Below are positions 537 through 57,899 of a DNA stretch of 64,000 bases, piece after piece (within the stretch, counting starts at the first letter, position 1; the number at the start of each line of letters is the position of its first letter). The stretch covers positions 1,052,881-1,116,880 of the forward strand of contig JAUPSS010000010.1 in NCBI GenBank assembly GCA_040285825.1, written 5' to 3'. A program made the translations under genes and the position numbers. This DNA comes from Eukaryota sp. TZLM1-RC (Eukaryota > Protista > Metamonada: BaSk clade). The notes under the pieces were generated by a model. That model did not search any database and was not told the origin of the DNA. It saw nothing but the letters and a program-made list of their open reading frames with translations.

Positions 537-1240
537 TGCGGTTGTAAATCACAATTTGGAAAGGAATTTGGATAAACACTCAAAACAGCTTGACAGAATT
601 TGCCCAATTGAAACACCCCAACATTTAACTCGGTCAGTACAAACCCACAGCACTAACCAATAAGTAATTGATAATATTCATCAGGCTTGATCAAGGAATA
701 AAGTCCCAAAAGTAATACTATGTTTTAACATTTTTCTGATTAAAGTAAAATGCTTGTTTCTATATGCACCAAATTTGAACCAATGACAAAATGACTAATG
801 TCAAAAATTCAAACACGTTGAGAACAATTTCAGAATACAATCTATCGGACACTGTCAATATCCATTTCAGTATCCACTCCCAGTCTATTTGGTTCACTTC
901 ACCCGTGACGTGATCTACCTCTTCATTGAAGCTGAAGATCATGAAAGTCAAAATCATACGTGATGATAGTAAACGTATGTTTTGAGGAGAGAAAATGTGA
1001 AAAACCAATAGAGTTGGAGTCCCATTTTATTCTCTTCAAAAATACTTTATTGTTAACAACTAGTCAACTCAGCTATGCATTGGCATTGAGTTATTCACCA
1101 AAATAGGCGAAATAGTAAAGATTAGAGATGGGCCTTCTCTTCCTTATTTGACCAAGATCCATCAAAAATGACACGTAAGCATGACGAAAAACCCATTAAA
1201 TATTTTGTTTCATCATTCATTATATCATCTTCATCTTGCA

Positions 1241-6200: not shown

Positions 6201-6632
6201 TAATTTGTTTAATTTTATAAGCAATTTTTTAATAGTTTTATCTGGCCAGCTCAAATACCCTGAAGAAGTAAGATTTCCGCATTTGACTGCACTTGTCTTA
6301 TATTCAAAAAAGAATGTTCGTCTAATTGCAGTTTCTGAAGGTTTGTACAAAATTGTCAGTTTGCTGTTTAAATAGATTCAAAGAAAAAGAAAAAAAGAAT
6401 TTGTTGCCGTTCCAAAACGGAATTTATACCACTGATGGAGTTGCTTCAGCAGTCTCTGCTACAGATATCGTATTTTATCAAATTAATCCAATGTTTGTAT
6501 GTTATTTGATTTTAGTGATGCCTTTGATTCAATTAATCGTTGCAGTATTCATGGTGCTTTGTTCAATTACTTGCCAGAATTGTTTCCATATACTCATACA
6601 TCTTTTAGCACAATTTCAGATTTGAATTTTGT
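3292..6632 (+). repeat. Tandem array (~1.15 kb period; units start at 3292, 4464, 5615) of a degraded CRE-like non-LTR RT fragment
   Basis: ORF pairs are offset by exactly 1151 bp. Broken frames read KLKNLHP, GRSVSLSGFSLDHIKAA, VRLIAVSE, LLPFQHG, LDFCNVFNSI, GVKQG-(deleted)-ALLFCLA and YTDD. Each unit begins TAAATTGGTTTTTGTGG, the same junction that follows the TRIM stop codon. Confidence 0.85.
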
Positions 6633-7699: not shown

Positions 7700-7850
7700 C
7701 TATCAGTAGAAGCAGAAAGTTTTTTTAATGACTTCCAAAAAATGGTTCAACAAAAAACAATGAAAAAATTTGATATTTTTTATGGCGTTCTCGAATTCAA
7801 TTTGCCATTATTAATATATTATCTCGGTTTTTCAATCGAATAAGAAAGCT
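7700..7850 (+). mobile_element. 3' fragment of an RLE non-LTR element (also at ~62900-63040)
   Basis: AESFFNDFQKMVQQKTMKKFDI..WRSRIQFAI parallels AMAFLEDFVVVVKERTGRIFNRVYWQNRIVFSI of the 24-26 kb element; DNA match to 62903-63037. Confidence 0.55.
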
Positions 7851-8314
7851 GTAGCTAAAAAGCAAGCAGATCAAGATGTTGTAGAGGAAACATTGGTTCA
7901 ATGAATTTCGTCCCATTAGTTATGAGTTTATTTTGTTAAGTTTGGAAGTTCAATAAATGTTTAATTATTGATACCCAGAATTTTGTACTTTCAGAATGGA
8001 AAATTCAAATATTTATCAATTTCAAAAAGGTAGCAATCAGAATACTGAGAAAGTTTTGTGAAAGCAGATAGCGTGTGATAATATTCGGATTTTCAACTTC
8101 AAATTGTCAAGAAAAAAGGTTAGTTTTTTTTTATTTTATTATTTTTTATTTATAACGTATAGACAAAGAAAACAATGAAAATAATAAAATATATTAAACA
8201 ACTCTTGACAATGTTGAAAAAACAATTTGATTAAAATCCAATGCGCAAAGTAACACAAAAGTAAAGTTGAATAATATAAAATAAAATCTCCCATCCACTC
8301 AATCAAAATCTCAA

Positions 8315-15070: not shown

Positions 15071-16043
15071 ATATTTTGTTCACTAAAGGCTCTATTCAAA
15101 CCACTTATTTATACCACTAGAATCATTGTCAATTCAGGAGTTCATCCACAGAAACGTCCACATTGGTGAGATAACTGACAACAATATGTGGTGAAATTAA
15201 AATTAAATTTTGCTGATTTTTATTCCTTATTCGATCAAAAATGTGAGTATATGATACATTCTTGGTTATAGTAGTAGAAAACCCTTTGCGTTTGCTTTCA
15301 TAAATGTCCAGTTCTAAACTTGGGACATTGATACATTGTATCTATTGGTCAGCAGAACCAGGCATCTAAACTGCCAGCATTTTTGGTTTTGAAACTTGTC
15401 CCCATTTGTTGCGAAATAATAACTCCATAACTGAAGCTTATTCTTTGAAAAATGGATTTTTGGTGAAATTTTCTTTTCCGTACTACATTCAGTTCCCAAT
15501 TAATAACAAGTTACGGAAAATCTTGAATTGGGTTTAAATTGTAGTAAATAAGCAATACCTTCTGCTAATTCAAAGTAAAATGAGACCAACTTGTGCATTT
15601 ACAAGTGTTATTTCTGACATTGCTGAACTTTTTTTATTGTTATCAAAAATTGGCATAACCTCCTCTTCATTTATTTATTTAATTTGACTCTGAATATTCG
15701 AATTTCCATCGATACAATTTAAAGTTAATAAATAAATAAAAGAATTGTTCTTTCGTCTTTTGACAAGCAGAATAAACAGCTTGTTTGCAAGCTTATCGAA
15801 ATGAACAATGGGTTGGTTGATTAATGTTACAATGATATATTTCAATGACCTATATTGGCTACTGAAAGTGTAAGGTTCAGTTGTTGTTTACAAATCTGTA
15901 AAGGTGGAGTAGGATTTCATCAATGAAGATCATGTCATACTTAAGTGCCATTCATAACATCCGGCTTTCGCTCAAATGCTCATTGATGGTGTAATGCTAA
16001 TATGCCACGTAAGCATGACGAAAAATCTCATCTTCATCTCCCA

Positions 16044-18083
16044 ATGTCTCACTTAGAATGTGGAATATGCCTTCAGATCATGGAGCAACCGACTACGCTA
16101 CCTTGTGGCCATAGCTTCTGTCGTGATCGCTGCCTGTTACCCTCAATGAAGCGTAACTCCACCTGTCCTCAATGCCATGAGGTGATTCCATCGATGTGTC
16201 ATCGTATTAACATCACTCTGCGTGATATTATTGAATCCTTCTCTCAACATTCTCCCGAACCTCAACTCTGCAAAGGATGTGAAGATGCTCCTGCCACCCT
16301 CTTCTGCTCTGATTGCGATTATTCTCTTTGTAACCAATGCTCTGATAAAGCCCACAGTCTCAAGATGTTCCAATCCCACAACATCGTACCCCTCTCCGAA
16401 CGCTCAAATGTCTCCCTACCAAAATGCCCTCACCATAAGGGCAAGCAAATCGAGCATTATTGCACCAAGTGCAAGGTTGCTCTATGCGATTCATGTGGCT
16501 TGCTCCAAGGCCACTCACTCCACCATGAAGCTCTTGTTTCTTTTTCACAAGCCAAGGAAGCCTTCACAAAGCAAATTGAAGAGTTTCAAGCCAAGGCTTC
16601 CACTATTACCCCCTTAGTAGTTCAATCCGCGGATAAAGTAGAATCTGTCGTAAGGGAAACCCTCAATCAATCCCAATCACTTCTTCATGATTTGATTGGT
16701 GATTTGATTAGACAGTCAGGCACCAAACTTCAGCAGTTGGAATCATCAAATACTGTTGAAGAATCACTTGCTTTTGATGGTGCTGCCAAGGAAAGAGCTC
16801 AAGAAGAGATTCAAAAGATTTATAATGTAGTTGATGAATTTAAAACTACTTTATTTTGTTGTTTTGATAATTTGGAATCTGAAACTATTGGTTTTAAGCT
16901 ATCTTTATTAGGTAAATTACTTGGCAAGGAGTTGATTGATGTTGACAAGTTGAATATTTCAAAAAGAGCTCAAGAACTTGTTTTTGCTGCCCAAATTAGT
17001 CAAGACTGTGTCCCTTCAAGAGATGAAATTGATGAATTAATTCCTCTTGAAATTGACTTGGAATTAAAACAAAAATTAATTATCAATTTTATTAATAATT
17101 CAAAATCAATTAATTTTTCAGATTTCATTTGGCTCTTTAACCTTGAATCAAATTTAGTTTCTAATATTGATTTTGATTTAGTTATTTCTAAATTGGAATT
17201 TGGTAGGTTATCCAATCAAGAATTTATCAATATTGTTAATTTTGCAATTCAACAATCTAATTTGTTATTAAGCAAGGTTATTGATAATTATTCATTTGAA
17301 TTGGTTCCAGAATTACCAGCTATTCCAATTAATTTATTATTAAATATTACTTTAACAAATTCTTTAAATAAAAGAAAAGAAGAATGGTTGGAGAAGGTAA
17401 TTAAAAAGAATTGTTCAAGGGACAATATTGGTGAAATTTCCAGAAGTTTATTAGGAAGGGAATTGATGTCCACAAAAATTAGTGTTGGGGTTTGGGTTCA
17501 TTCAGATCACATGAACGACATAACCACCAAGCTTAATAAAGGTTTAACTGAAAATTGGGGGGATTTAGAAGTTGTTATTAATTCAAGTGGTAACGCCATC
17601 AACAATTACAACGAACTTGAACCCTTTGATGTGGTGGTGTTGGATCCTCACCATGTCTCTTGTCCCGGCCAATACCTAAACCAGCTGTTAGAAGCTGGTA
17701 AGGGTTTGGTATTGTTCAACTTTAATCCACAAAAAAGCCCCCAAGGGTTTAATTACTCTTGCTTTAGTGGGGGTAATTATACTAACCTTTATTCACAACA
17801 AAACATTGTTAAAACAAACTCAAATGACCCAGTATTCACAAAAGTCAACTCTTTTGTTGTTCCTCATGCTCGTAAAGATGCCCAACTTGTCAATGGAACC
17901 TTGTTGGCAAGTGTGTCTAATGGAAGTCCTTTGATTGCAAAGAATGAAATAGGACAAGGTAGAATTGTGGAGTTTGGATGTGTTTATTGGAGTAGTGATA
18001 TTGGTGGTCATGGCTGGCAAAGCTCAACTGATGGTCACAGGTTGTTTGCCAATTCTATTGTATGGGCTTGTAAAGGGATTTAG
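16044..18083 (+). CDS. TRIM-like protein copy 2 (no linked RT remnant)
   Basis: Same architecture as copy 1. Similarity ends at TAAATTGGTTTTTGTGG (~18108). Confidence 0.85.
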   Translation: MSHLECGICLQIMEQPTTLPCGHSFCRDRCLLPSMKRNSTCPQCHEVIPSMCHRINITLRDIIESFSQHSPEPQLCKGCEDAPATLFCSDCDYSLCNQCSDKAHSLKMFQSHNIVPLSERSNVSLPKCPHHKGKQIEHYCTKCKVALCDSCGLLQGHSLHHEALVSFSQAKEAFTKQIEEFQAKASTITPLVVQSADKVESVVRETLNQSQSLLHDLIGDLIRQSGTKLQQLESSNTVEESLAFDGAAKERAQEEIQKIYNVVDEFKTTLFCCFDNLESETIGFKLSLLGKLLGKELIDVDKLNISKRAQELVFAAQISQDCVPSRDEIDELIPLEIDLELKQKLIINFINNSKSINFSDFIWLFNLESNLVSNIDFDLVISKLEFGRLSNQEFINIVNFAIQQSNLLLSKVIDNYSFELVPELPAIPINLLLNITLTNSLNKRKEEWLEKVIKKNCSRDNIGEISRSLLGRELMSTKISVGVWVHSDHMNDITTKLNKGLTENWGDLEVVINSSGNAINNYNELEPFDVVVLDPHHVSCPGQYLNQLLEAGKGLVLFNFNPQKSPQGFNYSCFSGGNYTNLYSQQNIVKTNSNDPVFTKVNSFVVPHARKDAQLVNGTLLASVSNGSPLIAKNEIGQGRIVEFGCVYWSSDIGGHGWQSSTDGHRLFANSIVWACKGI

Positions 18084-19165: not shown

Positions 19166-22081
19166 ATGCCTTTTACACATATTGGAACCTTTACCCACAA
19201 GTTTGAGGTTTCTAAATATGTTCATAACGCCACTAGATGCTCAGTAGTTAATGTCAATCTACCAAACAGTCCTCTCTCACACATGTCTGTAACGTTTCCT
19301 ACTGTGCCCAACTCAGACAGTGGTATTCCTCATTGTCTTGAACATCTTGTTTTTCTTGGATCGGAGCATTTCAAGCATAAAGGAACATTAGATAAAATTG
19401 CCACTCTTTCACTCTCCGATGGCACTAATGCTCATACCTTCATCGATCAGACAGTCTATTCTTGTGTATGTGCTGGTAATGAGGGGATTCTGCAACTCCT
19501 CCCTGTTTACATCGATCACCTATTCCGCCCAACCATAACCCATGAGAAAATGCTTACTGAGATCCATCACATTGACGGTGCAGGGAAAGACGGAGGTGTG
19601 GTTTACTGTGAAGTTAGCTCAGATCATTATTCATCTGAAAATCTTACATTTATGACATTATTAAAAGAATTGTATAAAGATAATAATTTCAAATACAATT
19701 ACGGTGGTGATCCTCACGAATTGGAGACTTTGACTTTGGAAGACGTCCTGAGATTTCACAAGAACTTTTACAGACCTCAGAAGTGTATGATTTTAACTAT
19801 TGGTAATATTGATTCAGAAAGTCTTTTGAATTCAATTGACGAATATTTCACAGGAATTGAGTCAATTGCAGATTCATCGTTGACTGCTGATGTCGAGTTG
19901 CCAACCCCCACAGTCAGTCAAACCGTAATCAAAAACGTTTACTTTCCTTCTGATGATGAGGACATTGGAACGGTTTTGTTGGGTTTTCTGTACACAAATG
20001 TCAATAATCATCTCGATTTGATTGCAATCAATGTGTTGATTGATTATCTCTCAGAGGGGTCAAGCTCTCCTTTTGTCAAATATTTGGTTGAATCTGAAGA
20101 TTCTTATTGTTCATCAGTTTTGATTGAGTCAATTGAAGTCAAGGATGTATCGCTCATAATTTCATGTGACGACGTTGACTACGAGAAAATTGAGGAAATA
20201 GGGGAGGTGATTGATGGTTTGATTGATGATTTGATTGGCAGTGGGTTAGATTGGGAACGTTTACACAGTCTGATTGAACGTAATCATCGACAATCACTTT
20301 TTGATCTTGATTGTAACCCTCTGTCGACTATTTCTGAGCTTGTGGTCAGGGACTTTCTCAATTCTGACACGTTCCCAGTCAACAACGACTCTTTACGTAA
20401 CGTTATCAGTCAGAAATATCTGGAATTATTTAAGTTAAACAAAGATTATTGGATAGATTTATTGAGGGTTTTCAAGAGACCTCGGGTTGAAGTTAGAGGT
20501 TACCCGTCTATCCAGAAAGGGAAAGAGGTAGAGAATCAATCAAAAATGATTGTGCAGAAACGTGTGCATCAACTAGGAGAGCAAGGGCTCAAAGTGTGTG
20601 AAGAAAAGCTCATAAAGGCCCAGAAAAGTCAAGCAAAGTCTCCTGATCCTAAAATATTTGAGAACTTCTCTGTTCCTCACCCTTCATCAATTGAATTCAT
20701 TAATGTTTCAATGCAAAATCTGGCTAATTTTTACATTTCCACTATTAATTCAAGTAATTTCAATACTATTCGGTTATTATTCGATTTGAGCACCTTTTCA
20801 AGCCTCGAACTATCATTATTTCCACTGCTAACCAATTGTTTTTTCCGTCAGAATGTTGTTGACTCGGCCGGAAATATTTTGAATTCAGAAGACTTGAACG
20901 ATTTGTTTGAAAAACTTTCTGTGGCATTTTGGGCTGGTCTCGGTGTTTCTTGTGGTCACACGTCATCAGTCTCTGGAAATCCATTGACCAATCTATTTGA
21001 GCTAGGATTTGTGGCCGATGTTCAAAATGTACCTAAGGTTTTGAGTTTATTCAAAAGTCTCCTCCAAAACGGAACTCTTACATCATTGATTGTCGATAAC
21101 GTAAAGAAGGTCATAAAGAGTCAAATCAATAGCTCAAAAAGAGATGGTGGATCGTTGTTACCAAAAATTGTGGATTATTACATTTTTAATAATTCTATTT
21201 TGAATGATACATCAATTTTTAAAACTTTCAAAATTTTATCAATGTTCGACAAGGAAGAGCTCACTGACAAGCTCAATCAGCTAATAAAGAAGCTGTTTTT
21301 TGAACGATCAAAAATTTTAAGAATCGGTGTTTCTGGTCTTGGTACTTCGACAGAGTCAATTACTGATCTCTTTTCTATTAGTAAAGAACCGCTACCAGAA
21401 CTACCGAAAATTTCCAATTGTCTGGTTAATTTCACCCAATTACCAACTTATAATATTATTAAATCACCCGTTATTAATTCTAATTTTGTGTCAATGGTTA
21501 TTAAAGGTCCTACTTCATTTAATTTTCCAAATAAAGCCGCTCTTATTGTCGCTTTAGAATACCTTAACCAACTAGAGGGACCCCTTTACACTCAAATCAG
21601 GGGACTTGGGATTAGCTATCATTTTGATTTGAGTCTGGATTCGGAGCTTGGTGTAATAAAATTCGAACTTTATGACTGTGGTGATGCTTTAAAGGGAATT
21701 TCCAAGTTTAAAGAAGTCTTGAGGAATTTTGTGGAAGGTCAAAATGGTGACGTTTTTGATCCTATTCAGTTCAAAGCAGCAATAGCTTCGTCTATTTATA
21801 GCATAACTTCTTCAGAATCGTCTGTGAGTTTGGCAGGTTTTAAATCGACTGTTATGCAATTAAAGGGTTATAGTCTTGATTGGTCAAGGAGTTTGATCGA
21901 TGAGATTAGGGATATGAGTAAGGATTTGGTATTGTATGCCTTCAAACAATTTCTTGGACCTTTTCTTGAAGATTCTTGCAGAATTTTCATTGTCACTTCA
22001 ACCACAGATGCAGAAAAAATTACTGCAGGTCTTCAGGATCAGAGTCTTGATGAGCAATATGTTTCTGATCTATTTAAGTAG
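19166..22081 (+). CDS. M16C (PreP/insulinase-like) zinc metallopeptidase
   Basis: Inverted zinc motif GIPHCLEHLVFLGS (HxxEH); TNAHT..DQTVY; GVVYCE; FHKNFYRP; EGPLYTQIRGLG. 971 aa. Confidence 0.85.
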   Translation: MPFTHIGTFTHKFEVSKYVHNATRCSVVNVNLPNSPLSHMSVTFPTVPNSDSGIPHCLEHLVFLGSEHFKHKGTLDKIATLSLSDGTNAHTFIDQTVYSCVCAGNEGILQLLPVYIDHLFRPTITHEKMLTEIHHIDGAGKDGGVVYCEVSSDHYSSENLTFMTLLKELYKDNNFKYNYGGDPHELETLTLEDVLRFHKNFYRPQKCMILTIGNIDSESLLNSIDEYFTGIESIADSSLTADVELPTPTVSQTVIKNVYFPSDDEDIGTVLLGFLYTNVNNHLDLIAINVLIDYLSEGSSSPFVKYLVESEDSYCSSVLIESIEVKDVSLIISCDDVDYEKIEEIGEVIDGLIDDLIGSGLDWERLHSLIERNHRQSLFDLDCNPLSTISELVVRDFLNSDTFPVNNDSLRNVISQKYLELFKLNKDYWIDLLRVFKRPRVEVRGYPSIQKGKEVENQSKMIVQKRVHQLGEQGLKVCEEKLIKAQKSQAKSPDPKIFENFSVPHPSSIEFINVSMQNLANFYISTINSSNFNTIRLLFDLSTFSSLELSLFPLLTNCFFRQNVVDSAGNILNSEDLNDLFEKLSVAFWAGLGVSCGHTSSVSGNPLTNLFELGFVADVQNVPKVLSLFKSLLQNGTLTSLIVDNVKKVIKSQINSSKRDGGSLLPKIVDYYIFNNSILNDTSIFKTFKILSMFDKEELTDKLNQLIKKLFFERSKILRIGVSGLGTSTESITDLFSISKEPLPELPKISNCLVNFTQLPTYNIIKSPVINSNFVSMVIKGPTSFNFPNKAALIVALEYLNQLEGPLYTQIRGLGISYHFDLSLDSELGVIKFELYDCGDALKGISKFKEVLRNFVEGQNGDVFDPIQFKAAIASSIYSITSSESSVSLAGFKSTVMQLKGYSLDWSRSLIDEIRDMSKDLVLYAFKQFLGPFLEDSCRIFIVTSTTDAEKITAGLQDQSLDEQYVSDLFK

Positions 22082-23770: not shown

Positions 23771-24050
23771 GTAGATCAGCATCTAAAAAAATGAAAGACC
23801 TCAAGTGTCTAGGATTTCGATTTGAGTTGAGTCAAGTTAACTCGAGTCAAACTTATCTGACTCAACTCGACTCGACTCATTCTTTCATCCATTGACTCGA
23901 CTCGACTCATGAGTCAATTAAGTTGACTCGACTCGACTCGACTCATTCTTACATCCATTGAGACAAGTCCACCTTAACATTATCATGAACCATTATTCTA
24001 TTTACATTTTTGATTATTTTTCTGTTCAAATATCATGTCATATCAAATAA

Positions 24051-26230: not shown

Positions 26231-26640
26231 ATATCAAATAAAAATCATACTTTATAGCAAAATGTTGAAACGTAAAAACTAAAATCTACTCACCTCACTA
26301 TAACTAACTATCAACCATTATGTGTTGTTTTTTATACCATGACCTTAAACATAACAAACATCTTGCAGTAGCTTCGTTCAAACGAGGATCTTGAATCGTC
26401 GAGGTTCTTGAATTTGTTCTACGTCAACAACAGGAATATTGGACATTGCTAACAGAATAGATAAGATTTACAAAAGAAAAAACGGTGTCATTATTACAGG
26501 TCTAGAATGTACAATCTTTTGATGATCTTTTGATTGATGTTTGATACAAGTTGTTGGTTTATTAAGAATCAACAACGCAGTTTTGACATGTTTTTGAAAA
26601 ATAGGAGAGGAAGAGGTTTTATGCCGCAAGTTGACGAATG

Positions 26641-26730
26641 TGAGTCGACTTGACTCATTTGAATAATAAGTGAATCGACTTGACTCATTTGAATAATAAG
26701 TGACTCGACTTGACTCATTTGAATAATAAG
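26641..26730 (+). repeat. 3 x 30-bp tandem repeat in the hAT subterminal region
   Basis: TGAnTCGACTTGACTCATTTGAATAATAAG three times, with no spacers. Confidence 0.9.
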
Positions 26731-26894
26731 TGACTCAACTCGACTCATGAGTCAAACGAGTCGAGTCGAGTCAACTCGAAACTCAATGAGTTGACTCAAC
26801 TCAAATCGAAATCCTACAAGTGTCGAATTGATCACCTTGATTCATTTCATCTTCATATTCCATAATCTATTTGACGTTTTTGTTCTATTAGCTG

Positions 26895-28883: not shown

Positions 28884-29750
28884 ATGTCTGCTCCGAATCT
28901 TGATCTTTCAGACCTGATCATCAGTAATCTTTCATCAAAACCAACCGTTAAACCTAAGCCATGCCCTCCAAACCTTCCAACGAAATATGTTCCTCCTGAA
29001 GTCACTGATCCTTCTGAAACACCCTCTAAAGATGAACATTTATCAGACTTTATTCCTGAACCAGAACAACCACCACTTCCACAACCGAAACCACACCGCC
29101 AAGATCCTATCCCAGAACCTCACAGTCCACAGCCCGTTGAACCCACTATAACCACTGAACAATCCATTTCTCCACTCCCAGAAGAAGAAGAAGTTCCACC
29201 CCCTAAGAAGGAGCACAAATCACTTAGACACATTTTTGACGTGTCCCGTGACGTGGAATCTGCAGTTCCCTACCATTTGGATGGAGATCCTTCCATGGAG
29301 AAGCCTGTGAATAGAAGGAAAAGATTAGCGCTCAGAACTAACAGTGAGGTGTTGTCTGCCATTCATTCTTTCAAAAAGGTTTTTAAGTTTAATGATGACA
29401 ACTCTATAGATAGGAATGAATACTCGAGAATCCATGCAAGAATTTGTCAATCTCTATACCCAAGTGTAACAAACGCCATGATTAGAAAATTATGCGAAGA
29501 TGATTGGAAACGTGATTCTAAGGGTCGTGATTGCTTGACCAGTGAAGACCTGGACGATGTTTTGTTTCAATTGGTAGATCACTGGACAATGACAGTCGAT
29601 AGTTCGGAATATATCGAATTTTTAAAAATTTTGACGGAGCGCGTGCGATTTGAGGGCAGTAATAACATCAATGCTTATAGTGAGGTACTACCTGAATACA
29701 AACCAAAAAGTGTCAAGAAAGAAAAAAGTAAGAAAAAGAGGAAAAAGTAG
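28884..29750 (+). CDS. Pro-rich protein with EF-hand-like region and basic C-terminal tail
   Basis: 288 aa; EF-like loops NDDNSIDRNEY and DSKGRDCLTSEDL; KKEKSKKKRKK tail. Confidence 0.7.
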   Translation: MSAPNLDLSDLIISNLSSKPTVKPKPCPPNLPTKYVPPEVTDPSETPSKDEHLSDFIPEPEQPPLPQPKPHRQDPIPEPHSPQPVEPTITTEQSISPLPEEEEVPPPKKEHKSLRHIFDVSRDVESAVPYHLDGDPSMEKPVNRRKRLALRTNSEVLSAIHSFKKVFKFNDDNSIDRNEYSRIHARICQSLYPSVTNAMIRKLCEDDWKRDSKGRDCLTSEDLDDVLFQLVDHWTMTVDSSEYIEFLKILTERVRFEGSNNINAYSEVLPEYKPKSVKKEKSKKKRKK

Positions 29751-29984
29751 TGAACAGTAGTGCAATTGTATTATATTTTTTTGATTCAATAAATGCCTTT
29801 ATTTATTGGTTATTATTGAGCTTTTTATTACTTAAATATTATATCAATGGAAAGTGATCATTGAATTAAGGATAAGTATTTTGAAATTATTTGAAGCAAG
29901 ATCTATTTTTTTCTCCAACGGGTCACATGTTGAAATAATAAATACGTTATCATTTAGGCCTGAAAATCTTGATTAAAACTAAGT
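29643..29984 (+). repeat. Left copy of ~345-bp direct repeat flanking the LanM cassette (3' end plus 3' flank of the EF-hand gene)
   Basis: Aligns with 34084-34429; 11 differences in the first 108 nt by manual count. Confidence 0.85.
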
Positions 29985-30319: not shown

Positions 30320-33097
30320 CTAGTTAAACAATAAGACACACGGTATATCATCTGAAAACATATATCTAAACAATAAGTAAGAAATTCCAGCACATCCACG
30401 AAACAACGAATGTCTTGGTCGAAGGGCCAATGATGACGCGTTTTGTTTTGATAGACGATGTCGCACGAGTTGTTCGACTACTTTGGGAGGTGTCGTTTTC
30501 AATTCAATACAAACGTCCAAGCATCCAGTAGATCCACAACACAGAGTAAGGTCTGACTTGATATCAGAAATCTGTTTAGCAGCAGTGATTACAGATTGTA
30601 GTGCACCATGAGGCATATCGATGTCAAAACAAGATCGCCACAATGTTATTCCTGCAGCACCGTGGCACCATGCACATAGATTGGAGGTAGCAATTTTGCG
30701 AAGGTCCTTCCAATTACTCTCTTCTGCTACATACAAACTGTCCTCATATTTGACAGCAAGATTAAGGTGGTCAGTAAATTCATCACTTTCAAGTATCTTC
30801 ATACATTTGCAAAGTGCATAGCAACATCCAGAAACACCATGAGAAAAGCCTCCTAGGGGAGCGACGCTTTCATCTGGCATTGTGTCCCAAGCTGCTCCAC
30901 GATCCTGTGGAATCAAACCGGAAGCCAGTCTACGAGCTCCAACAAGGATTCGAAGACGAAGTTCTTCACGTTTCTGTAAGGATATATTGGGAAAATACTT
31001 GAGAACTGCAGCAACACAGCATAAATAACCCGCAAGTCCTCCAATTATATCAAAGGTAGTATCGTTGGACAAAACATCCAATGGAACAGCAAATAAAATA
31101 TTGACCGCATTTACTAGAAAGTCTTCCTGTTGAAGAGCATAGCCAGCCACTGTTAATGCATAGGCAACACCAGAAATTCCATTAGCCACAGAGATACCGA
31201 GATTAGTGGAAGGTTGACTGATAAGTTGTGAAGCAAGTGAATGGGTAATTTCCTTGCAGTATTGATCTTTAGTGGCGATATAGGCACAAGAAAACAGAAA
31301 AACAACACCAGCAAGGCCATTATATAGACCAATATCAAAATTACTTTCAGTTTGTGCATTAGTGAGAAGACTTGAAAGTGCTGTATGAGCCAATTCCAGC
31401 GCACACTCCAAGATGGCATGTGGACCTACAGTATTCAACTCGACACTAGGATCAACAGTGATCATCTGGTAAAGTTGATCTGTAGCAGGTTTAGATGACA
31501 AGACTATCGCCAAATGACGGTACTTCTGGCACAATAATTCACTACAACAGCCTGGTAATGTATCAGTTGGAAAGGAAGAGCCACTACCATCCAGAAAACA
31601 ATTGTTTGTTCGGTCGTGGAAAAACAAGGGGACATTTCCAGACAACAACGCAGAGAGTTCGCACTCAAGGACCTCATTTGGTGTTTGAAACCCATGCATA
31701 TCGCTAAGTCGCCTAGTGATGAACAAAGCAGTGGATTGGCTTGTTGAAATTGTAATGTCTCCAGCAAGAATGCGCTTCAAAATTAAGGTATAGACACTTG
31801 TGTCCCTAAGTATAACTCGGGTAACTGAGGGAAACGGAATCTCCCCAAAGGAGTGACCTAGTGATTGTAAATGTTTCCAGCACTCAACATATCCCTGCTT
31901 CACTATATGAGCATGGTCATGTAGAAGTAAAGGAGCTCCGTGTACTGAGAAAGGCAAAGAAGACTGATACTCATCCGTTTCAGCATGAAAGAATTGAATA
32001 TTGGTCGTTCTATCATTAACTACAGTATAATGTGGGGTAAAAACACGAGAAGCAGAGAACTGTTGAAATGCAGCTATCCAAGAATAGCTTTCAGTTTCAT
32101 ACAAATCAGGTATATTTTGTATCAAATAAGTAGAAGCAAGACTGGCTTGCTGAAATTTTGCTACATTCAAAGTCATTTGAGGAAAAAAGGGATCTAATAC
32201 AGTCTCAAGGTCCACAACGACAGGAGAAGTACTAGTTGCAATCAAATTTTCAGAATGAAGATCGGTTATTTGAAGAAGCTGGGCAATGGCCATTATGCTT
32301 CCACAGCGCAGGAAATACAATTTCTCATCACCATCATTATTACAACACGATTTGTGTATAAATTCATTCCATGAATAGTCGTTCTTATCTGATTTGGGGC
32401 TGGTGCTATATTCAGGAGAGGGTGTCAGGGACTTCATGACACGAAACTGCAAATGATTGGGCAAACAAAGGGCTTGGGTAAAGTTCTCAAAAAACTTGGT
32501 ACATTGACCACCAAAAGGCTTGTAAACAATGTGTTTGATGACACCAGAATGATTCGAAATTTTCAAAAGCACTGATTGTTGGCCTCCTACATGACGGTCC
32601 GACTGCAGAACTTGTAGATCGTGTAGTTTCGTACAACTATCCACACCACACCAACGGCATATTTCTGAATGATCTTTGGAAAATCGAGTTAGACACTGAC
32701 AAATATTGCACGCATACTGGTCCGCAGTTAGCTCTAACAAGGAAACAATAAAGGAATGGTGGCGAGGAAAGTCACGCACCATGTTGTAATATCCACCAGA
32801 AGGTGATAAGAAGTACTTTTGATAAGAATTGATGGTCTCTTCGTTGTTGACGTCTTCTTGAGTTGAAGAGAAATATTGACTAATGACAGGAACAACAATA
32901 TCATCCAACGACAACGATAGATCATTAACAACACCTGCCAGAAGTTGGCAAATCGGGACTTTCACTTTTTGACTTATAGAAACAGCTGTTTTACACATCT
33001 TTTGACACGAAGCTTCTAAGAACTTTCTGAACAACAAAGCACGAAGGTTGTCCCTAAAGTGGATGGATGACATAATTATTTGAGTGATGGATTCCAT
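30320..33097 (-). CDS. lanM: Class II lanthipeptide synthetase LanM (dehydratase + LanC-type cyclase, CCG type)
   Basis: Dehydratase motifs SDRHVGG, IVYKP, WNEFI, TDLHSENLIA, VVDLET, RVILRDTSVY, NVPLF. Cyclase motifs GLYNGLAG, DIIGGLAG, GFSHGVSG, NWKDLR, AWCHGAAG, LCCGSTG, LFRGCAG. Uninterrupted 925 aa. Confidence 0.92.
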   Translation of the reverse strand: MESITQIIMSSIHFRDNLRALLFRKFLEASCQKMCKTAVSISQKVKVPICQLLAGVVNDLSLSLDDIVVPVISQYFSSTQEDVNNEETINSYQKYFLSPSGGYYNMVRDFPRHHSFIVSLLELTADQYACNICQCLTRFSKDHSEICRWCGVDSCTKLHDLQVLQSDRHVGGQQSVLLKISNHSGVIKHIVYKPFGGQCTKFFENFTQALCLPNHLQFRVMKSLTPSPEYSTSPKSDKNDYSWNEFIHKSCCNNDGDEKLYFLRCGSIMAIAQLLQITDLHSENLIATSTSPVVVDLETVLDPFFPQMTLNVAKFQQASLASTYLIQNIPDLYETESYSWIAAFQQFSASRVFTPHYTVVNDRTTNIQFFHAETDEYQSSLPFSVHGAPLLLHDHAHIVKQGYVECWKHLQSLGHSFGEIPFPSVTRVILRDTSVYTLILKRILAGDITISTSQSTALFITRRLSDMHGFQTPNEVLECELSALLSGNVPLFFHDRTNNCFLDGSGSSFPTDTLPGCCSELLCQKYRHLAIVLSSKPATDQLYQMITVDPSVELNTVGPHAILECALELAHTALSSLLTNAQTESNFDIGLYNGLAGVVFLFSCAYIATKDQYCKEITHSLASQLISQPSTNLGISVANGISGVAYALTVAGYALQQEDFLVNAVNILFAVPLDVLSNDTTFDIIGGLAGYLCCVAAVLKYFPNISLQKREELRLRILVGARRLASGLIPQDRGAAWDTMPDESVAPLGGFSHGVSGCCYALCKCMKILESDEFTDHLNLAVKYEDSLYVAEESNWKDLRKIATSNLCAWCHGAAGITLWRSCFDIDMPHGALQSVITAAKQISDIKSDLTLCCGSTGCLDVCIELKTTPPKVVEQLVRHRLSKQNASSLALRPRHSLFRGCAGISYLLFRYMFSDDIPCVLLFN

Positions 33098-33151
33098 GGA
33101 GGGTGATGAACTTAAACTTTAAATATTTTGATCTCTGATTTAGCCACTTTC
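33098..33151. promoter_or_regulatory. Putative bidirectional promoter between lanM and the small ORF
   Basis: 54-bp head-to-head spacer with an AT-rich core (CTTAAACTTTAAATATTTT). Both ATGs are preceded by the pyrimidine-rich context seen before host ATGs in this window. Confidence 0.45.
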
Positions 33152-33391
33152 ATGATTTCAGTGCCCTTCTCTGACCTCGAACTTGAGTTGTCCCGCATTC
33201 TGTTGCGCCGTCGTTCGTTGTTGCGTCCTTGTACTCAAACAGGTGGTGTATGTGCCTCAGGTCATGTCTCATGCGGTCATTGCCCAAGCTCGAAAAAAGG
33301 TTGTAAAAGAATTCCCTCCGAGGATGGTTTCTCTATCACTGATGACCATTCTGTAAATCAACTTGTCCAAGCTCTAGGGCACCCCTTCTAG
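33152..33391 (+). CDS. Candidate lanthipeptide precursor (LanA-like), 79 aa
   Basis: MISVPFSDLELELSRILL-RRR-SLLRPCTQTGGVCASGHVSCGHCPSSKKGC-KR-IPSEDGFSITDDHSVNQLVQALGHPF. All 5 Cys and 7 Ser/Thr lie in residues 22-51; divergent from lanM. Confidence 0.6.
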   Translation: MISVPFSDLELELSRILLRRRSLLRPCTQTGGVCASGHVSCGHCPSSKKGCKRIPSEDGFSITDDHSVNQLVQALGHPF

Positions 33392-34083
33392 GTTGTGTTG
33401 TTGCTCATGTATAAAGTCATTTCTTCAAAGTCTGTTTTATTGTCTTTCAACAACACGTTGAACGACATACATTCACTTTTATATTCAGTTGTCTTGGACG
33501 ATTCTTCAACATACCGTTGATGTACTGTCTCCGTTTACAGTAATTTTGCAAAATTGAAACAGCTTTTCTGAAAGAACAAGCATGATTTCAGATTTGCAAC
33601 TCATACGAATGGATTAAGCATACTCAGTGTACTTCCCTTCCCTTGTGTTGTTTCTACTGCAATCATCAGACAGACTTAACGACTTTATAGAAACGCTGGA
33701 TGTGTCAACTATGGGTCTACTGTATAATATTAGGACACACGTCTCTTGTAAGTCCGACATGTGTCTCAAGCTTCTCTTTATAATCTATTGATTGAAGATA
33801 AGCTATAGCTGTTGTTTGTAAATCAGATTCTTTGGAGGTTCTATTGTTGCTTATTAATTTCTAGTCCTCATCAGCTGACTGACAGTCATGTCCTCAGTTA
33901 GTCACAGGTAACTACAAAAGCAAACGCCAGAATCTTCAAAAAGCTTTTAGAAGAATCAAATATGACCTAGACCTTACCATTCGACAGTTCTGTCATCACA
34001 TGTTTTCTGCACTTTGTATCAAACGTATGCATGAAAATAACAATCCATTTACAAAGAAGAATAAGATAATTTATAATAAGCAT

Positions 34084-34429
34084 GTGCGATTTCACGGCAG
34101 TAATAACATCAATGCTTACAGTAAGGTACTTCCTGAATACAAACCAAAAAGTGCCAAGAAAGAAAAAAGCAGGAAACAGAGGAAAAAGTGAAAAATCAGT
34201 GCAATTGTATTATATTTTTTTGATTCAATAAATTTCTTTATTTATTGGTTATTAATGAGCTTTTTTTTACCAAATATTGTATCAATGGAAAGTGATCATT
34301 GAATTCGGGGTAACTATTTTGAAATTATTTGAAGCAAGATCTGTTTTCAAATTTTATCTCCAATGGGTCACATATTGGAATAATAAATACGTTATTATTT
34401 AGACCTGAAAATCATGATTAAAAATAAGT
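34084..34429 (+). repeat. Right copy of the direct repeat (non-functional duplicate of the EF-hand gene 3' end)
   Basis: Encodes VRFHGSNNINAYSKVLPEYKPKSAKKEK versus VRFEGSNNINAYSEVLPEYKPKSVKKEK in the intact gene. Confidence 0.85.
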
Positions 34430-35628: not shown

Positions 35629-37668
35629 CTAAATCCCTTTACTAGCCCATACAATAGAATTGGCAAACAACCTATGACCATCAGTTGAGCTTTGCCAACC
35701 AGAACTTCCAATATCACTACTCCAATAAACACATCCAAACTCCACAATTCTACCTTGTCCTATTTCATTCTTTGCAATTAAAGAACTTCCATTAGACACA
35801 CTTGCCAACAAGGTTCCATTGACAAGTTGGGCATCTTTACGAGCCTCACGAACAACAAAAGAGTTGACATTTGTGAATATTGGGTCATTTGACTTTGTTT
35901 TAACCATGTTTTGTTGTGATCCAAATTCAGTCCAAGTACCCCCACTAAAGCAAGAGTAATTAAACCCTTGGGGGCTTCTTTGTGGATACCAGTTGAACAA
36001 TACCAAACCTTTACCAGCTTCTATCAGCTGGTTTAGGTATTGGCCTGGACAAGAGACATGGTAAGGAGACACCACCACCACATCAAAGGGTTCAAGTTCG
36101 TTGTAATTGTTGAAGGCGTTACTACTTGAATTAATAACAACTTCTAAATCTCCCCAATTTTCAGTTAAACCTTTATTAAGAAAGGTGGTTAGATAGTTAA
36201 TGTGACCTGAAAAAACCCAAACCCCAACACTAATTTTGGTCATCAATTCCCTTCCTAATAAATTTCTGGAAATTTCACCAACATTGTCCCTTGAACAATT
36301 CTTTTTAATAACCTTCTCCAACCATTCTTCTTTTCTTTTATTTAAAGAATTTGTTAAAGTAATGTTTGATAATAAATTACTTGGAATAGTTGGTAATTCT
36401 GGAACTAATTCAAATGAATAATTATCAATAACCTTGCTTAATAACAAAGAATTAGAATGTTGAAGTGCAAAATTAACAACATTAATAAATTCTTGATTGG
36501 AAAACCTACCAAATTCCAATTTAGGAATTACTAAATCAGAATCAATATTAGAAACTAAATGAGATTCAAGGTTAAAGAGCCAAATAAAATCTGAAACATT
36601 AATTGATTTTGAATTATTGATAAAATTAATAATTAATTTTTGTTTTAATTCCAAGTCAATTTCAAGAGGAATTAATTCATCAATTTCATCTCTTGAAGGG
36701 ACACAATCTTGACCAATTTGGGCAGCAAAGACAAGTTCTTGAGCTCTTTTTGAAATATTCAGCTTGTCAACATCAATCAACTCCTTGCCAAGTAATTTAC
36801 CTAATAAAGATAGCTTAAAACCAATAGTTTCAGATTCTAAATTATCAAAACAAATAAAAAAAGTAGTTTTAAATTCATTAACTACATTATAAATCTTTTG
36901 AATCTCTTCTTGAGCTCTTTCCTTGGCAGCACCATCAACAGCAAGGGATTCTTCGACAGTATTTGAGGACTCTAACTGGTGAAGTTTGGTGCCTGACTGT
37001 CTAATCAAATCACCAATCAAATCATGAAGAATTGATTGGGATTGATTGAGGGTTTCCCTTACGACAGATTCGACTTTATCCCCTGATTGAGCTACCAAGG
37101 GAATAATAGTGGAAGTATTGGCTTGAAACTCTTCAATTTGCTTTGTGAAGGCTTCCTTGGCTTGAGAAAAGGAAACGAGAGCTTCGTGGTGAAGTGAGTG
37201 GCCTTGGAGCAAGCCACATGAATCGCATAGAGCAACCTTGCACTTGGTGCAATAATGCTCGATTTGCTTACCCTTATGGTGAAGGCATTTTGGTAGGGAG
37301 ACATTTGAGCGTTCGGAGAGGGGTACGATGTTGTGGGATTGGAACATCTTAACAGAATGGACATGGTCAGAACAGTTCTTGCAAAGAGAAGCATCACAGT
37401 CAGAGCAGAAGAGGGTGGCAGGAGCATCTTCGCATCCTTTGCAGAGTTGAGGTTCGGGAGAGTGTTGAGAGGAGGAATCGATGATGTCGCGTAGAGTGAT
37501 GTTAATACGGTGACACATCGATGGAATCTCCTCGCGGCATTGAGGACAGGTGGAGTTATGCTTCTTTGAGGGCAACAGACATCGATCACGACAGAAGCTA
37601 TGACCACAAGGGAGCGTAGTTGGTTGTTCCATGATCTGAAGGCATATTCCGCATTCTAGGTGAGACAT
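35629..37668 (-). CDS. TRIM-like protein copy 3
   Basis: Same architecture; intact ORF from MSHLEC. Confidence 0.85.
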   Translation of the reverse strand: MSHLECGICLQIMEQPTTLPCGHSFCRDRCLLPSKKHNSTCPQCREEIPSMCHRINITLRDIIDSSSQHSPEPQLCKGCEDAPATLFCSDCDASLCKNCSDHVHSVKMFQSHNIVPLSERSNVSLPKCLHHKGKQIEHYCTKCKVALCDSCGLLQGHSLHHEALVSFSQAKEAFTKQIEEFQANTSTIIPLVAQSGDKVESVVRETLNQSQSILHDLIGDLIRQSGTKLHQLESSNTVEESLAVDGAAKERAQEEIQKIYNVVNEFKTTFFICFDNLESETIGFKLSLLGKLLGKELIDVDKLNISKRAQELVFAAQIGQDCVPSRDEIDELIPLEIDLELKQKLIINFINNSKSINVSDFIWLFNLESHLVSNIDSDLVIPKLEFGRFSNQEFINVVNFALQHSNSLLLSKVIDNYSFELVPELPTIPSNLLSNITLTNSLNKRKEEWLEKVIKKNCSRDNVGEISRNLLGRELMTKISVGVWVFSGHINYLTTFLNKGLTENWGDLEVVINSSSNAFNNYNELEPFDVVVVSPYHVSCPGQYLNQLIEAGKGLVLFNWYPQRSPQGFNYSCFSGGTWTEFGSQQNMVKTKSNDPIFTNVNSFVVREARKDAQLVNGTLLASVSNGSSLIAKNEIGQGRIVEFGCVYWSSDIGSSGWQSSTDGHRLFANSIVWASKGI

Positions 37669-37774
37669 TGGGAGATGAAGATGAGATAATGAATGATGAA
37701 ACAAAATATTTCAAGGTTTTGTTGTTATGCTTACGTGTCCAAAGAAATTCCATTTTCTGCAATTCTTAATATTT

Positions 37775-55461: not shown

Positions 55462-57501
55462 CTAAGTCCCTTTACTAGCCCATACAATAGAATTGGCAAA
55501 CAACCTGTGACCATCAGTTGAGCTTTGCCAGCCAGCACTATTAATATCACTACTCCATTCATTACATCCAAACTCCACAATTCTACCTTGTCCTATTTCA
55601 TTCTTTGCAATTAAAGGACTTCCATTAGACACACTTGCCAACAAGGTTCCATTGACAAGTTGGGCATCTTTACGAGCATAAGGAACAGCAAATGAGTTGA
55701 CATTTGTGAATATTGGGTCATTTGACTTTGTTTTAACAATGTTTTGTTGTGATCCAAGGTCAGCCCATTTACCCCCACTAAAGCAAGAGTAATTAAACCC
55801 TTGGGGGCTTTTTGGTGGATAATTGTTGAACAATACCAAACCTTTACCAGCTTCTAACAGCTTGTTTAGGTATTGGCCGGGACAAGATAATAATCGAGGA
55901 CACAAAACCACCACATCAAAGGGTTCAAGTTCGTTGTAATTGTTGATGTCGTTACCACTTGAATTAATAACAACTTCTAAATCCCCCCAATTTTCAGTTA
56001 AACCTTGATTAAGCTTGGTGGGTAGTTCGATAATGAAGCCTGAATCACCCCAAACCCCAACACTAATTTTGGACATCAATTCCCTTCCTAATAAATTTCT
56101 GGAAATTTCACCAATATTGTCCCTTGAACAATTCTTTTTGATAACCTTCTCCAACCATTCTTCTTTTCTTTTATTTAAAGAATTTGTTAAAGTGATATTT
56201 GATAATAAATTACTTGGAATAGTTGGTAATTCTGGAACTAATTCAAATGAATAATTATCAATAACCTTGCCTAATAACAAAGAATTAGAATGTTGAATTG
56301 CAAAATTAAAAACATTGAAAAATTCATGATTGGAAAACCCACCAAATTCCAATTTAGCAATAACTAAATCAAAATCAATATTGGAAACTAAATTAGATTC
56401 AAGGTTAAAGAGCCAAATAAAATCTGAAACATTAATTGATTTTGAATTTTTGACAAAATTGATAATTAATTTTTGTTTTAATTCCGAGTCAATTTCAAGA
56501 GGAATTAATTCATCAATTTCATCTCTTGAAGGGACACAATCTTGACCAATTTGGGCAGCAAAGACAAGTTCTTGAGCTCTTTTTGAAATATTCAGCTTGT
56601 CAACATCAATCAACTGCTTGCCAAGTAATTTAGCTAATAAAGATAGTTTAAAACCAATAGTTTCAGATTCTAAATTATCAAAACAAGTAAATAAACTAGT
56701 TTTAAATTCATCAACTACATTAAAAATCTTTTGAATCTCTTCTTCAGCTCTTTCCTTGGCAGCACCATCAAAAGCAAGTGATTCTTCGACAGTATTTGAG
56801 GATTCCAACTGTTGAAGTTTGGTGCCTGACTGTCTAATCAAATCACCAATCAAATCATGAAGAATTGATTGGGATTGATTGAGGGTTTCCCTTACGACAG
56901 ATTCTACTTTATCCGCGGATTGAACTACCAAGGGGGTAATAGTGGAAGTATTGGCTTGAAACTCTTCAATTTGCTTTGTGAAGGCTTCCTTGGCTTGCGA
57001 AAAAGAAACGAGAGCTTCGTGGTGAAGTGAGTGGCCTTGTAGCAAACCACATGAATCACAGAGAGCAACCTTGCACTTGGTGCAATAATGCTCGATTTGC
57101 TTACCCTTATGGTGAGGGCATTTTGGTAGGGAGACCTTTGAGCGTTCGGAGAGGGGTACGACGTTGTGGGATTGGAATGCTTTCATTGCGTGAACACCAG
57201 CAGAGCATTTCTCACAGAAAGAGAGATCACAGTTAGAGCAGAAGAGGGTGGCAGGAGCTTCTTCGCATCCTTTACAGTGTTGAGGTTCGGGAGAGTGTTG
57301 AGTGGAGGATTCAATGATGTCGCGCAGAGTGATGTTAATACGGTGGCACATGGAAGGAATCTCCTCGCGACACTGAGGACAGGTTGAGTTGTGCTTCTTC
57401 GAGGGCAACAGACATCGATCACGACAGAAGCTATGACCACAAGGGAGCGTGGTTGGTTGCTCCATGATCTGAAGGCATATTCCGCATTCTAGGTGAGACA
57501 T
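55462..57501 (-). CDS. TRIM-like protein copy 4
   Basis: Same architecture; intact ORF from MSHLEC. Confidence 0.85.
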   Translation of the reverse strand: MSHLECGICLQIMEQPTTLPCGHSFCRDRCLLPSKKHNSTCPQCREEIPSMCHRINITLRDIIESSTQHSPEPQHCKGCEEAPATLFCSNCDLSFCEKCSAGVHAMKAFQSHNVVPLSERSKVSLPKCPHHKGKQIEHYCTKCKVALCDSCGLLQGHSLHHEALVSFSQAKEAFTKQIEEFQANTSTITPLVVQSADKVESVVRETLNQSQSILHDLIGDLIRQSGTKLQQLESSNTVEESLAFDGAAKERAEEEIQKIFNVVDEFKTSLFTCFDNLESETIGFKLSLLAKLLGKQLIDVDKLNISKRAQELVFAAQIGQDCVPSRDEIDELIPLEIDSELKQKLIINFVKNSKSINVSDFIWLFNLESNLVSNIDFDLVIAKLEFGGFSNHEFFNVFNFAIQHSNSLLLGKVIDNYSFELVPELPTIPSNLLSNITLTNSLNKRKEEWLEKVIKKNCSRDNIGEISRNLLGRELMSKISVGVWGDSGFIIELPTKLNQGLTENWGDLEVVINSSGNDINNYNELEPFDVVVLCPRLLSCPGQYLNKLLEAGKGLVLFNNYPPKSPQGFNYSCFSGGKWADLGSQQNIVKTKSNDPIFTNVNSFAVPYARKDAQLVNGTLLASVSNGSPLIAKNEIGQGRIVEFGCNEWSSDINSAGWQSSTDGHRLFANSIVWASKGT

Positions 57502-57899
57502 TGGGAAATGAAGATGAGATAATGAATGGTGAAACAAAATATTTGAAGGGTTTTTCGTCATGCTTACGTGTCATTGATGATGGTTCTCTGGTTTTTGCAA
57601 TGCATTCAACAGGTGAAATGAGAACACAAGATGAAAGAATCTTCTTTTATTCAAACCACAGATTATTGTGTACAGATACTGAACAACCTTAGCTTTCCAA
57701 AATCTACATTGTTTTTATATATTTTTATTTATTCCAACAAAAACAAACTATACGACAAGGTTAAAATTCTATGTCTTCATAACCCAAATCAGCCAAGAAC
57801 AATTGACTGGAAGTTTTTCCTGGACTGGAAATCTTTATTCCCTTGTAATAAATTGCATTTAAGGTATACTCAATGTCTAACCCCCACAGATCTTCAAAA

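Follow-up and report, generated by a model that had tools for sequence, protein, structure and literature searches.

Lanthipeptide gene clusters have been described in prokaryotes: a survey of prokaryotic genomes, with eukaryotes outside its scope, recorded them in bacteria and counted 33 in archaea (PMC7268733). In the class II systems (CylM, LicM2, LctM, ProcM) the DUF4135 dehydratase and the LANC_like cyclase lie in one chain, LanM. Eukaryotic LanC proteins, in a study of 2095 eukaryotic species, were not associated with lanthipeptides or dehydratases (PMC11251773); LanCL1/2/3 and plant GCR2 share the LanC-like barrel, but LanCLs, which lack both a dehydratase and a precursor, catalyse the addition of glutathione to dehydro residues (PMC11251773, PMC9934072). 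Leader-core-follower precursors are known from the RiPPs of fungi and plants, peptides made on ribosomes and modified after translation (MSDIN/POPB, orbitides/PCY1), in which followers are common (PMC6514808), but these are macrocyclised by serine proteases and none by a lanthionine synthetase. Protists are not mentioned in the same review of eukaryotic RiPPs. Here we describe a 64,000-nucleotide stretch (the window) of contig JAUPSS010000010.1 of the protist Eukaryota sp. TZLM1-RC, in which a lanM gene (30320..33097, minus strand) lies head-to-head with a gene for a 79-aa precursor-like peptide (33152..33391, plus strand). We consider it likely that the two form a class II lanthipeptide pathway encoded in the nucleus of the protist and derived from one old prokaryote-to-eukaryote transfer. 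This would place a known enzyme type, LanM, in a new domain of life, the new features being a follower, a leader without a double-Gly site, the lack of accessory genes and a lost β-sheet. An earlier annotation made from the sequence alone (the first-pass annotation) knew of no characterised protist example, and our literature search, with most subscription papers beyond its reach, likewise brought up no publication describing a eukaryotic LanM.

The LanM enzyme and its clade

The lanM open reading frame (ORF) is intron-less, has no internal stop and encodes 925 aa, full length for its clade. Profile searches placed the DUF4135 dehydratase at residues 118-493 (31619..32746, minus strand, E 4e-48) and the LANC_like cyclase at residues 588-923 (30329..31336, minus strand, E 4e-41). 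The score against TIGR03897 (LanM) was 319.8 bits, the cut-off being 304, which was also reached by 6/6 relatives tested. In an alignment with CylM, the residues of the phosphorylation set (K193, D279, H281, N284 and D296, corresponding to CylM K274, D347, H349, N352 and D364) and of the elimination set (D167, H169, R427 and T433, corresponding to D252, H254, R506 and T512) were kept, 9/9 in all; mutagenesis in CylM has shown that these residues drive phosphorylation and elimination (PMC4550811). The cyclase has the acid His H753 in GFSHG and the zinc ligands C811 (WCHG) and C853-C854 (CCG), forming a Cys-Cys-Cys site of the CCG type, which is the commoner type among 136 other LanMs and is shared with ProcM-type enzymes. 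The AlphaFold model (predicted local distance difference test 86, predicted template modelling score 0.83) was most similar in Foldseek to LicM2 (E 1e-26) and CylM (E 7e-22), with LanCL proteins only at 1e-10, and the cyclase scored far better against LanM than against LanCL. The dehydratase is fused to the LanC domain, so the protein is not a stand-alone LanC of the eukaryotic LanCL type. By every defining test run on sequence and model the ORF is a LanM, as the first-pass annotation had read it from its dehydratase and cyclase residues, and ATP-dependent dehydration and cyclisation would be expected by analogy.

One element of the fold differs. In CylM a three-stranded β-sheet (residues 666-690), dispensable for dehydration, has been proposed as the leader-binding element. 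The equivalent site in the query (31316..31402, minus strand) spans 29 aa, about 16 aa shorter, and no strand was seen at its place in the AlphaFold model. The region measures 26-30 aa in the query's subclade versus 39-50 aa in 41/41 prokaryote-type LanMs, and its conserved Trp is lost throughout the clade. As judged from alignment and model, the proposed leader-binding sheet is lost from the query, and recognition of the peptide may now depend on the dehydratase or on the follower.

The N-terminus is approximately 100 aa shorter than in many LanMs and the upstream frame contains stops, so that the 79-aa ORF could be thought an antisense shadow of a decayed lanM 5' end. However, in all close relatives whose 5' end is intact the protein starts near the same motif, F-R-D-x-x-R-x-L, and thus the query is not truncated; moreover, codon bias prefers the plus-strand ORF over its antisense, and other loci have similar ORFs in the same position. 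These observations largely refute such a decay, which we regard as highly improbable.

Relatives were sought by an exhaustive phmmer search, in which four full-length matches stood out from the mass of LanMs, and P0058 and P0033 were recovered with a profile of the clade. A word-indexed protein search recovered the query alone. The seven LanMs fell on one branch with a Shimodaira-Hasegawa-like approximate likelihood ratio test (SH-aLRT) support of 100 in a tree with 66 other LanMs (LG+G4), and again in a tree with 37 other LanMs under LG+C20 with posterior mean site frequencies and in a dehydratase-only tree including Haloferax, Bacillus, Streptococcus and Nostoc enzymes; all trees were unrooted, with SH-aLRT as the only support measure. 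The residues G196 and C199 (G196-x-x-C199) and Q327 are private to the clade (7/7 members versus 0-1% of 136 other LanMs), D65 is likewise common to the clade and found in 0-1% of the others, and in leave-one-out profiles each member ranked first of 222. Neither the private residues nor these ranks depend on branch attraction, and they therefore support the clade beyond its long branches. The query is 22-25% identical to its nearest relatives and at most 22-25% to any prokaryote-type LanM. Clade members share only 20-30% identity with one another, which indicates that the clade is old.

Two relatives come from clearly eukaryotic contigs, and no relative was shown to be prokaryotic. L091 lies on a 1.24-Mb contig with RasGEF, RCC1 and metacaspase genes and GT-AG introns; a giant-virus origin was ruled out by these spliceosomal introns. 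L004, with L093, carries a ZZ finger, a secreted Cys-rich Hint protein and long microsatellites, and its gene directions alternate. A probable in-frame 108-nt GT-AG intron was also seen at the lanM 5' end of L006 (303-613), where a Pro/His/Thr-rich first exon is joined in frame to lanM (frame checked by script). L003 (5713 bp, equal in length to the longest record of run X3) may share a sample, and hence a habitat, with window-matching reads.

No close relative was found by 8-mers in 185,579 prokaryotic genomes (GTDB), where nine motif matches included no LanM; these scans were narrow and leave absence unproven. A narrow scan of viral sequences (IMG/VR) yielded no clade member, its matches being three ordinary LanMs and five unrelated occurrences of the motif, and a scan of metagenome contigs gave at least 80 ordinary prokaryote-type LanMs, with no clade member among the matches listed. 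Haloarchaeal class II clusters also place a LanM outside Bacteria, but the Haloferax enzyme was not sister to the clade in the dehydratase-only tree, and an archaeal donor is unsupported. The unrooted trees resolved no sister group or donor. Nevertheless, given the range of the LanM family, we infer a prokaryotic origin of the clade. The horizontal acquisition proposed in the first-pass annotation would agree with such a source, but it was not a one-off recent transfer: the enzyme belongs to an old, deeply diverged clade that had already spread over several eukaryotes and has no identifiable bacterial donor. The phylogeny that the same annotation had called for thus places the query in a distinct clade of LanMs.

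The precursor-like peptide and its counterparts

The 79-aa ORF, which is also called as a gene in a public collection, starts 54 bp from lanM on the opposite strand. Its putative leader (residues 1-26; 33152..33229, plus strand) contains no Cys and no Gly-Gly, and has RRR at 19-21, with S22 just upstream of the core. The putative core (residues 27-51; 33230..33304, plus strand) holds all five Cys of the ORF (C27, C34, C41, C44 and C51) alongside six Ser/Thr (T28, T30, S36, S40, S46 and S47), and the putative acidic follower (residues 52-79, 28 aa; 33305..33388, plus strand) begins with KR and has no Cys. No signal peptide was detected in this peptide or in LanM. No double-Gly (GG/GA) cleavage site was found, and the LanA models in NCBIfam and Pfam gave no match. 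Kex2/furin cleavage at RRR and KR was rejected, as it would suit no peptide but that of the window: such sites are absent from the other four described below, and a signal peptide is lacking.

The layout is shared with related loci. Of the five relatives with upstream DNA, three have an ORF of the same layout (74-88 aa) beside lanM: a 74-aa ORF head-to-head at 33 bp in L003, a 78-aa ORF head-to-head at 132 bp in L091, and in L004, upstream on the lanM strand, two paralogous peptides that vary in the core but are conserved in leader and follower. The five peptides have leaders of 26-35 aa, cores of 15-25 aa with 4-6 Cys and 4-6 Ser/Thr, and acidic followers of 19-31 aa. When five or more Cys are required, each is the sole such ORF of its locus, including the whole window (128 strand-kb), and the chance of such an ORF starting in a given 200-bp slot was about 1e-3 or lower, using a layout filter defined after the peptides had been seen. 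The L091 and L004 leaders are alike (p 0.0025), and their LanMs are sisters. On the P0003 contig (JGI 3300059473), lanM is closely followed downstream by a tandem pair of 43-aa ORFs (3779-4113), which are possible precursors; the DNA available at L090 was too short to look for one.

The unique layout in the window, the host-like codons and the arrangement recurring in related loci argue that the 79-aa ORF is more than a chance ORF, and the recurrence of same-layout ORFs beside lanM suggests that it is probably the precursor of the neighbouring LanM. The first-pass annotation had remarked on the clustering of Cys among Ser/Thr and had advised searching related protists for the same pair; counterparts of the pair were found in L003, L004 and L091. 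Its expectation of a precursor is thereby strengthened, but not as a normal LanA: a short ORF adjoining lanM, with a leader followed by a variable Cys/Ser/Thr-rich core, resembles class II LanA, whereas the internal core, the C-terminal follower, the missing Gly-Gly site, the lack of a LanA model match and the divergent orientation instead of an operon set it apart. The peptide would therefore resemble LanA in role while standing outside the known class II precursor types. The likeness to the fungal and plant precursors concerns layout only, and no sequence relation is implied.

It could also be argued that LanM is an active eukaryotic enzyme acting on host proteins or unlinked peptides, with the small protein as a zinc-finger or metallothionein-like metal-binding or regulatory partner. 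CxxC pairs in the L003 core and a CCCSCSC run in the L091 core are compatible with this, as are the lack of homology between the window peptide and the others, the lost sheet, and the association of the CCG zinc site with broad substrate tolerance (PMC11251773). However, Cys spacing differs among all the peptides while the three-part layout is kept, which fits hypervariable cores and not a conserved zinc finger or other metal fold; the L004 paralogues, with constant leader and follower around a variable core, show the usual RiPP signature; and searches of Atlas and Pfam with the precursor-like peptides gave no match, and none to a metal-binding family (a profile built from the peptides recovered only its own inputs). 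Such a partner role thus seems rather unlikely, and we prefer the reading of the peptide as a substrate.

P0058 has a hydrolase of the β-lactamase fold with an SxxK motif fused to its LanM, and in L004 such a hydrolase adjoins lanM; the two are related (28%, E 4e-10), and the hydrolase is absent from the window. The fusion, at L090 (59-4630), is a 1523-aa protein made up of a clade LanM with the hydrolase at its C-terminus. L004 encodes, in addition, three apparent tailoring enzymes: a carbamoyltransferase, a family 2 glycosyltransferase (GT2) and a cupin/JmjC protein. L004 (1-10766) and L093 (3372-10252) hold an apparently eukaryotic candidate cluster for a tailored RiPP, with carbamoyltransferase, ZZ-finger, hydrolase, GT2, cupin/JmjC, two precursors and lanM.

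Probable residence in the host genome

A single record exists for the lanM product, on a 1,381,037-bp contig of GCA_040285825.1. In composition and repeat load it fits the Skoliomonas assemblies (GC 36%, long reads, decontaminated; PMC11316075), which come from bacterivorous anaerobes of soda lakes, and the host is probably a Skoliomonas. The window contains eukaryotic neighbours, namely Vps50/syndetin, GAS8-like, DUF4200, RING-B-box and M16 peptidase genes and retroelements. The G+C content at third codon positions of lanM (0.335) is within the host range, and its codon scores (0.011 synonymous, 0.035 full) fall within the ranges of 0.001-0.031 and 0.031-0.124 given by ten host genes; the 79-aa ORF scored 0.053 (synonymous, rank 2) and 0.093 (full, rank 1) when compared with 41 intergenic ORFs. 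A pyrimidine-rich context precedes both ATGs, as in host genes, and the start and 3' contexts of both genes are host-like. No Shine-Dalgarno sequence and no operon were found, and promoter-like sites were at shuffle level. The absence of LanT, LanP and immunity genes reported by the first-pass annotation holds for the 24 longer ORFs scanned in the window and for the related loci, and bacterial class II clusters differ in this, as well as in their regulator genes.

The cassette of 4.1 kb is bracketed by a direct repeat. The left copy (342 bp; 29643..29984, plus strand) comprises the 3' end of a 288-aa host gene (28884-29750) and downstream DNA, and the right copy (34084..34429, plus strand) is 88% identical to it with four indels. 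Inside the bracket, 690 bp at 33392-34083 contain no ORF and match nothing else in the window.

These data bear on two further explanations. One is an assembly chimera or contaminant, in which bacterial DNA from the culture was joined into the protist contig. Direct repeats are able to mislead assemblers, and in a low-depth 2023 sample, which also held 90%-identical copies of host retroelements, the five contigs (151-184 nt) identical to the cassette all lie inside it (P ~0.15 by chance), leaving the junctions uncovered. However, 12% divergence with indels is too much for an assembly duplication; codon usage and gene signals are those of the host; and the narrow prokaryotic scans gave no close relative, the nearest kin lying in eukaryotic contigs. 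We judge a chimera to be very improbable. The other explanation is that the genes are a silent or decaying passenger, an old insertion no longer expressed and without a product. The surroundings are rich in repeats, with the cassette between duplicated DNA, and no orthologue turned up from other species of the host's group. On the other hand, the ORF is intact with all catalytic residues despite the repeat divergence, an outcome whose neutral expectation for a 2.8-kb ORF was P ~3e-8 (a rough figure, which assumes repeats no older than the insertion and overstates indel rates), and both genes have host-like contexts. A mere passenger thus appears improbable. The residence of LanM in the host genome, proposed for the pair in the first-pass annotation, is well supported by the sequence: the codons are host-like, the host repeats that flank the cassette have diverged, and distant eukaryotic relatives show the pairing too.

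Four RING-B-box (TRIM-like) paralogues, ~92% identical, lie at 1181-3283, 16002-18083, 35629-37704 and 55462-57561, several of them adjoining decayed retroelement DNA. Three tandem copies of a retroelement-like unit of ~1151 bp occupy 3365-6630, and GACTC-rich short-repeat clusters (23827-23972 and 26636-26805) flank a reverse-transcriptase fragment. A 971-aa M16 metallopeptidase is encoded at 19166-22081, 8 kb from lanM. Some class III lanthipeptides are matured by M16 proteases (PMC10885120); this peptidase was rejected as part of the system because it is not linked to lanM in the other loci.

Proposed pathway and its significance

In the pathway that we propose, lanM and the peptide gene would be transcribed divergently from the gap between their ATGs (33098..33151, 54 bp, 67% A+T), a candidate bidirectional promoter. 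As neither protein has a signal peptide, LanM would act in the cytosol, binding the peptide by its leader and/or follower. By analogy with CylM, LctM and ProcM, it would phosphorylate core Ser/Thr with ATP and eliminate the phosphate to give dehydroalanine and dehydrobutyrine, and the three-Cys zinc cyclase would then join the thiols of the core Cys to these residues, closing as many as five (methyl)lanthionine rings. Plausible ring pairs are S22-C27, T28 or T30-C34, S36-C41, S40-C44 and S46 or S47-C51, although this topology is a guess. General host proteases could remove leader and follower, and the linked β-lactamase-fold serine hydrolase is a candidate processing enzyme in two relatives. 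The product would most likely be a polycyclic peptide of ~25 residues. That it acts against bacteria or other microbes is the weakest step, for which we see about even odds. After the one old transfer, microbial eukaryotes may have retained the enzyme, or handed it on among themselves, in a patchy manner.

It is important to mention several points that weigh against this interpretation. The proposed leader-binding sheet is lost; all clade members sit on long branches, and the cyclase-only tree did not resolve the clade, its monophyly not being rejected (p 0.86, approximately unbiased test). The contigs of L002, L003 and L090 are too short to be assigned to a domain of life, and one near-copy occurs in GCA_041445565.1, an assembly of undefined nature. 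The L091 lanM, on a long-read contig, has a frameshift near codon 50 (7843-8004), present also in the matching Logan contig L092, which may be an error or real. No precursor was seen in the 315 bp upstream in L002 or the 599 bp upstream in L006. The window peptide is not significantly similar in sequence to its counterparts (best p without correction 0.03), so that its link to them would rest on position and layout, the latter judged by a filter set after the fact. Lastly, none of the contigs of the 2023 sample spans a junction.

Taken together, we think it probable, on balance, that the locus represents a eukaryote-restricted branch of class II lanthipeptide biosynthesis in several unrelated microbial eukaryotes, with leader-core-follower precursors head-to-head with LanM and with a β-lactamase-fold hydrolase, carbamoyltransferase, glycosyltransferase and JmjC/cupin protein added in some lineages, which would make it the first eukaryotic lanthipeptide natural-product pathway. 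The follower and the missing sheet are a natural variant that makes substrate recognition by LanM directly testable, and the four enzyme-peptide pairs are suited to the standard Escherichia coli co-expression assay. An enzyme from a eukaryotic cytosol may also suit peptide engineering in eukaryotic cells. If the LanM and precursor pair works, lanthipeptides would be extended to eukaryotes and protists would gain a RiPP pathway.

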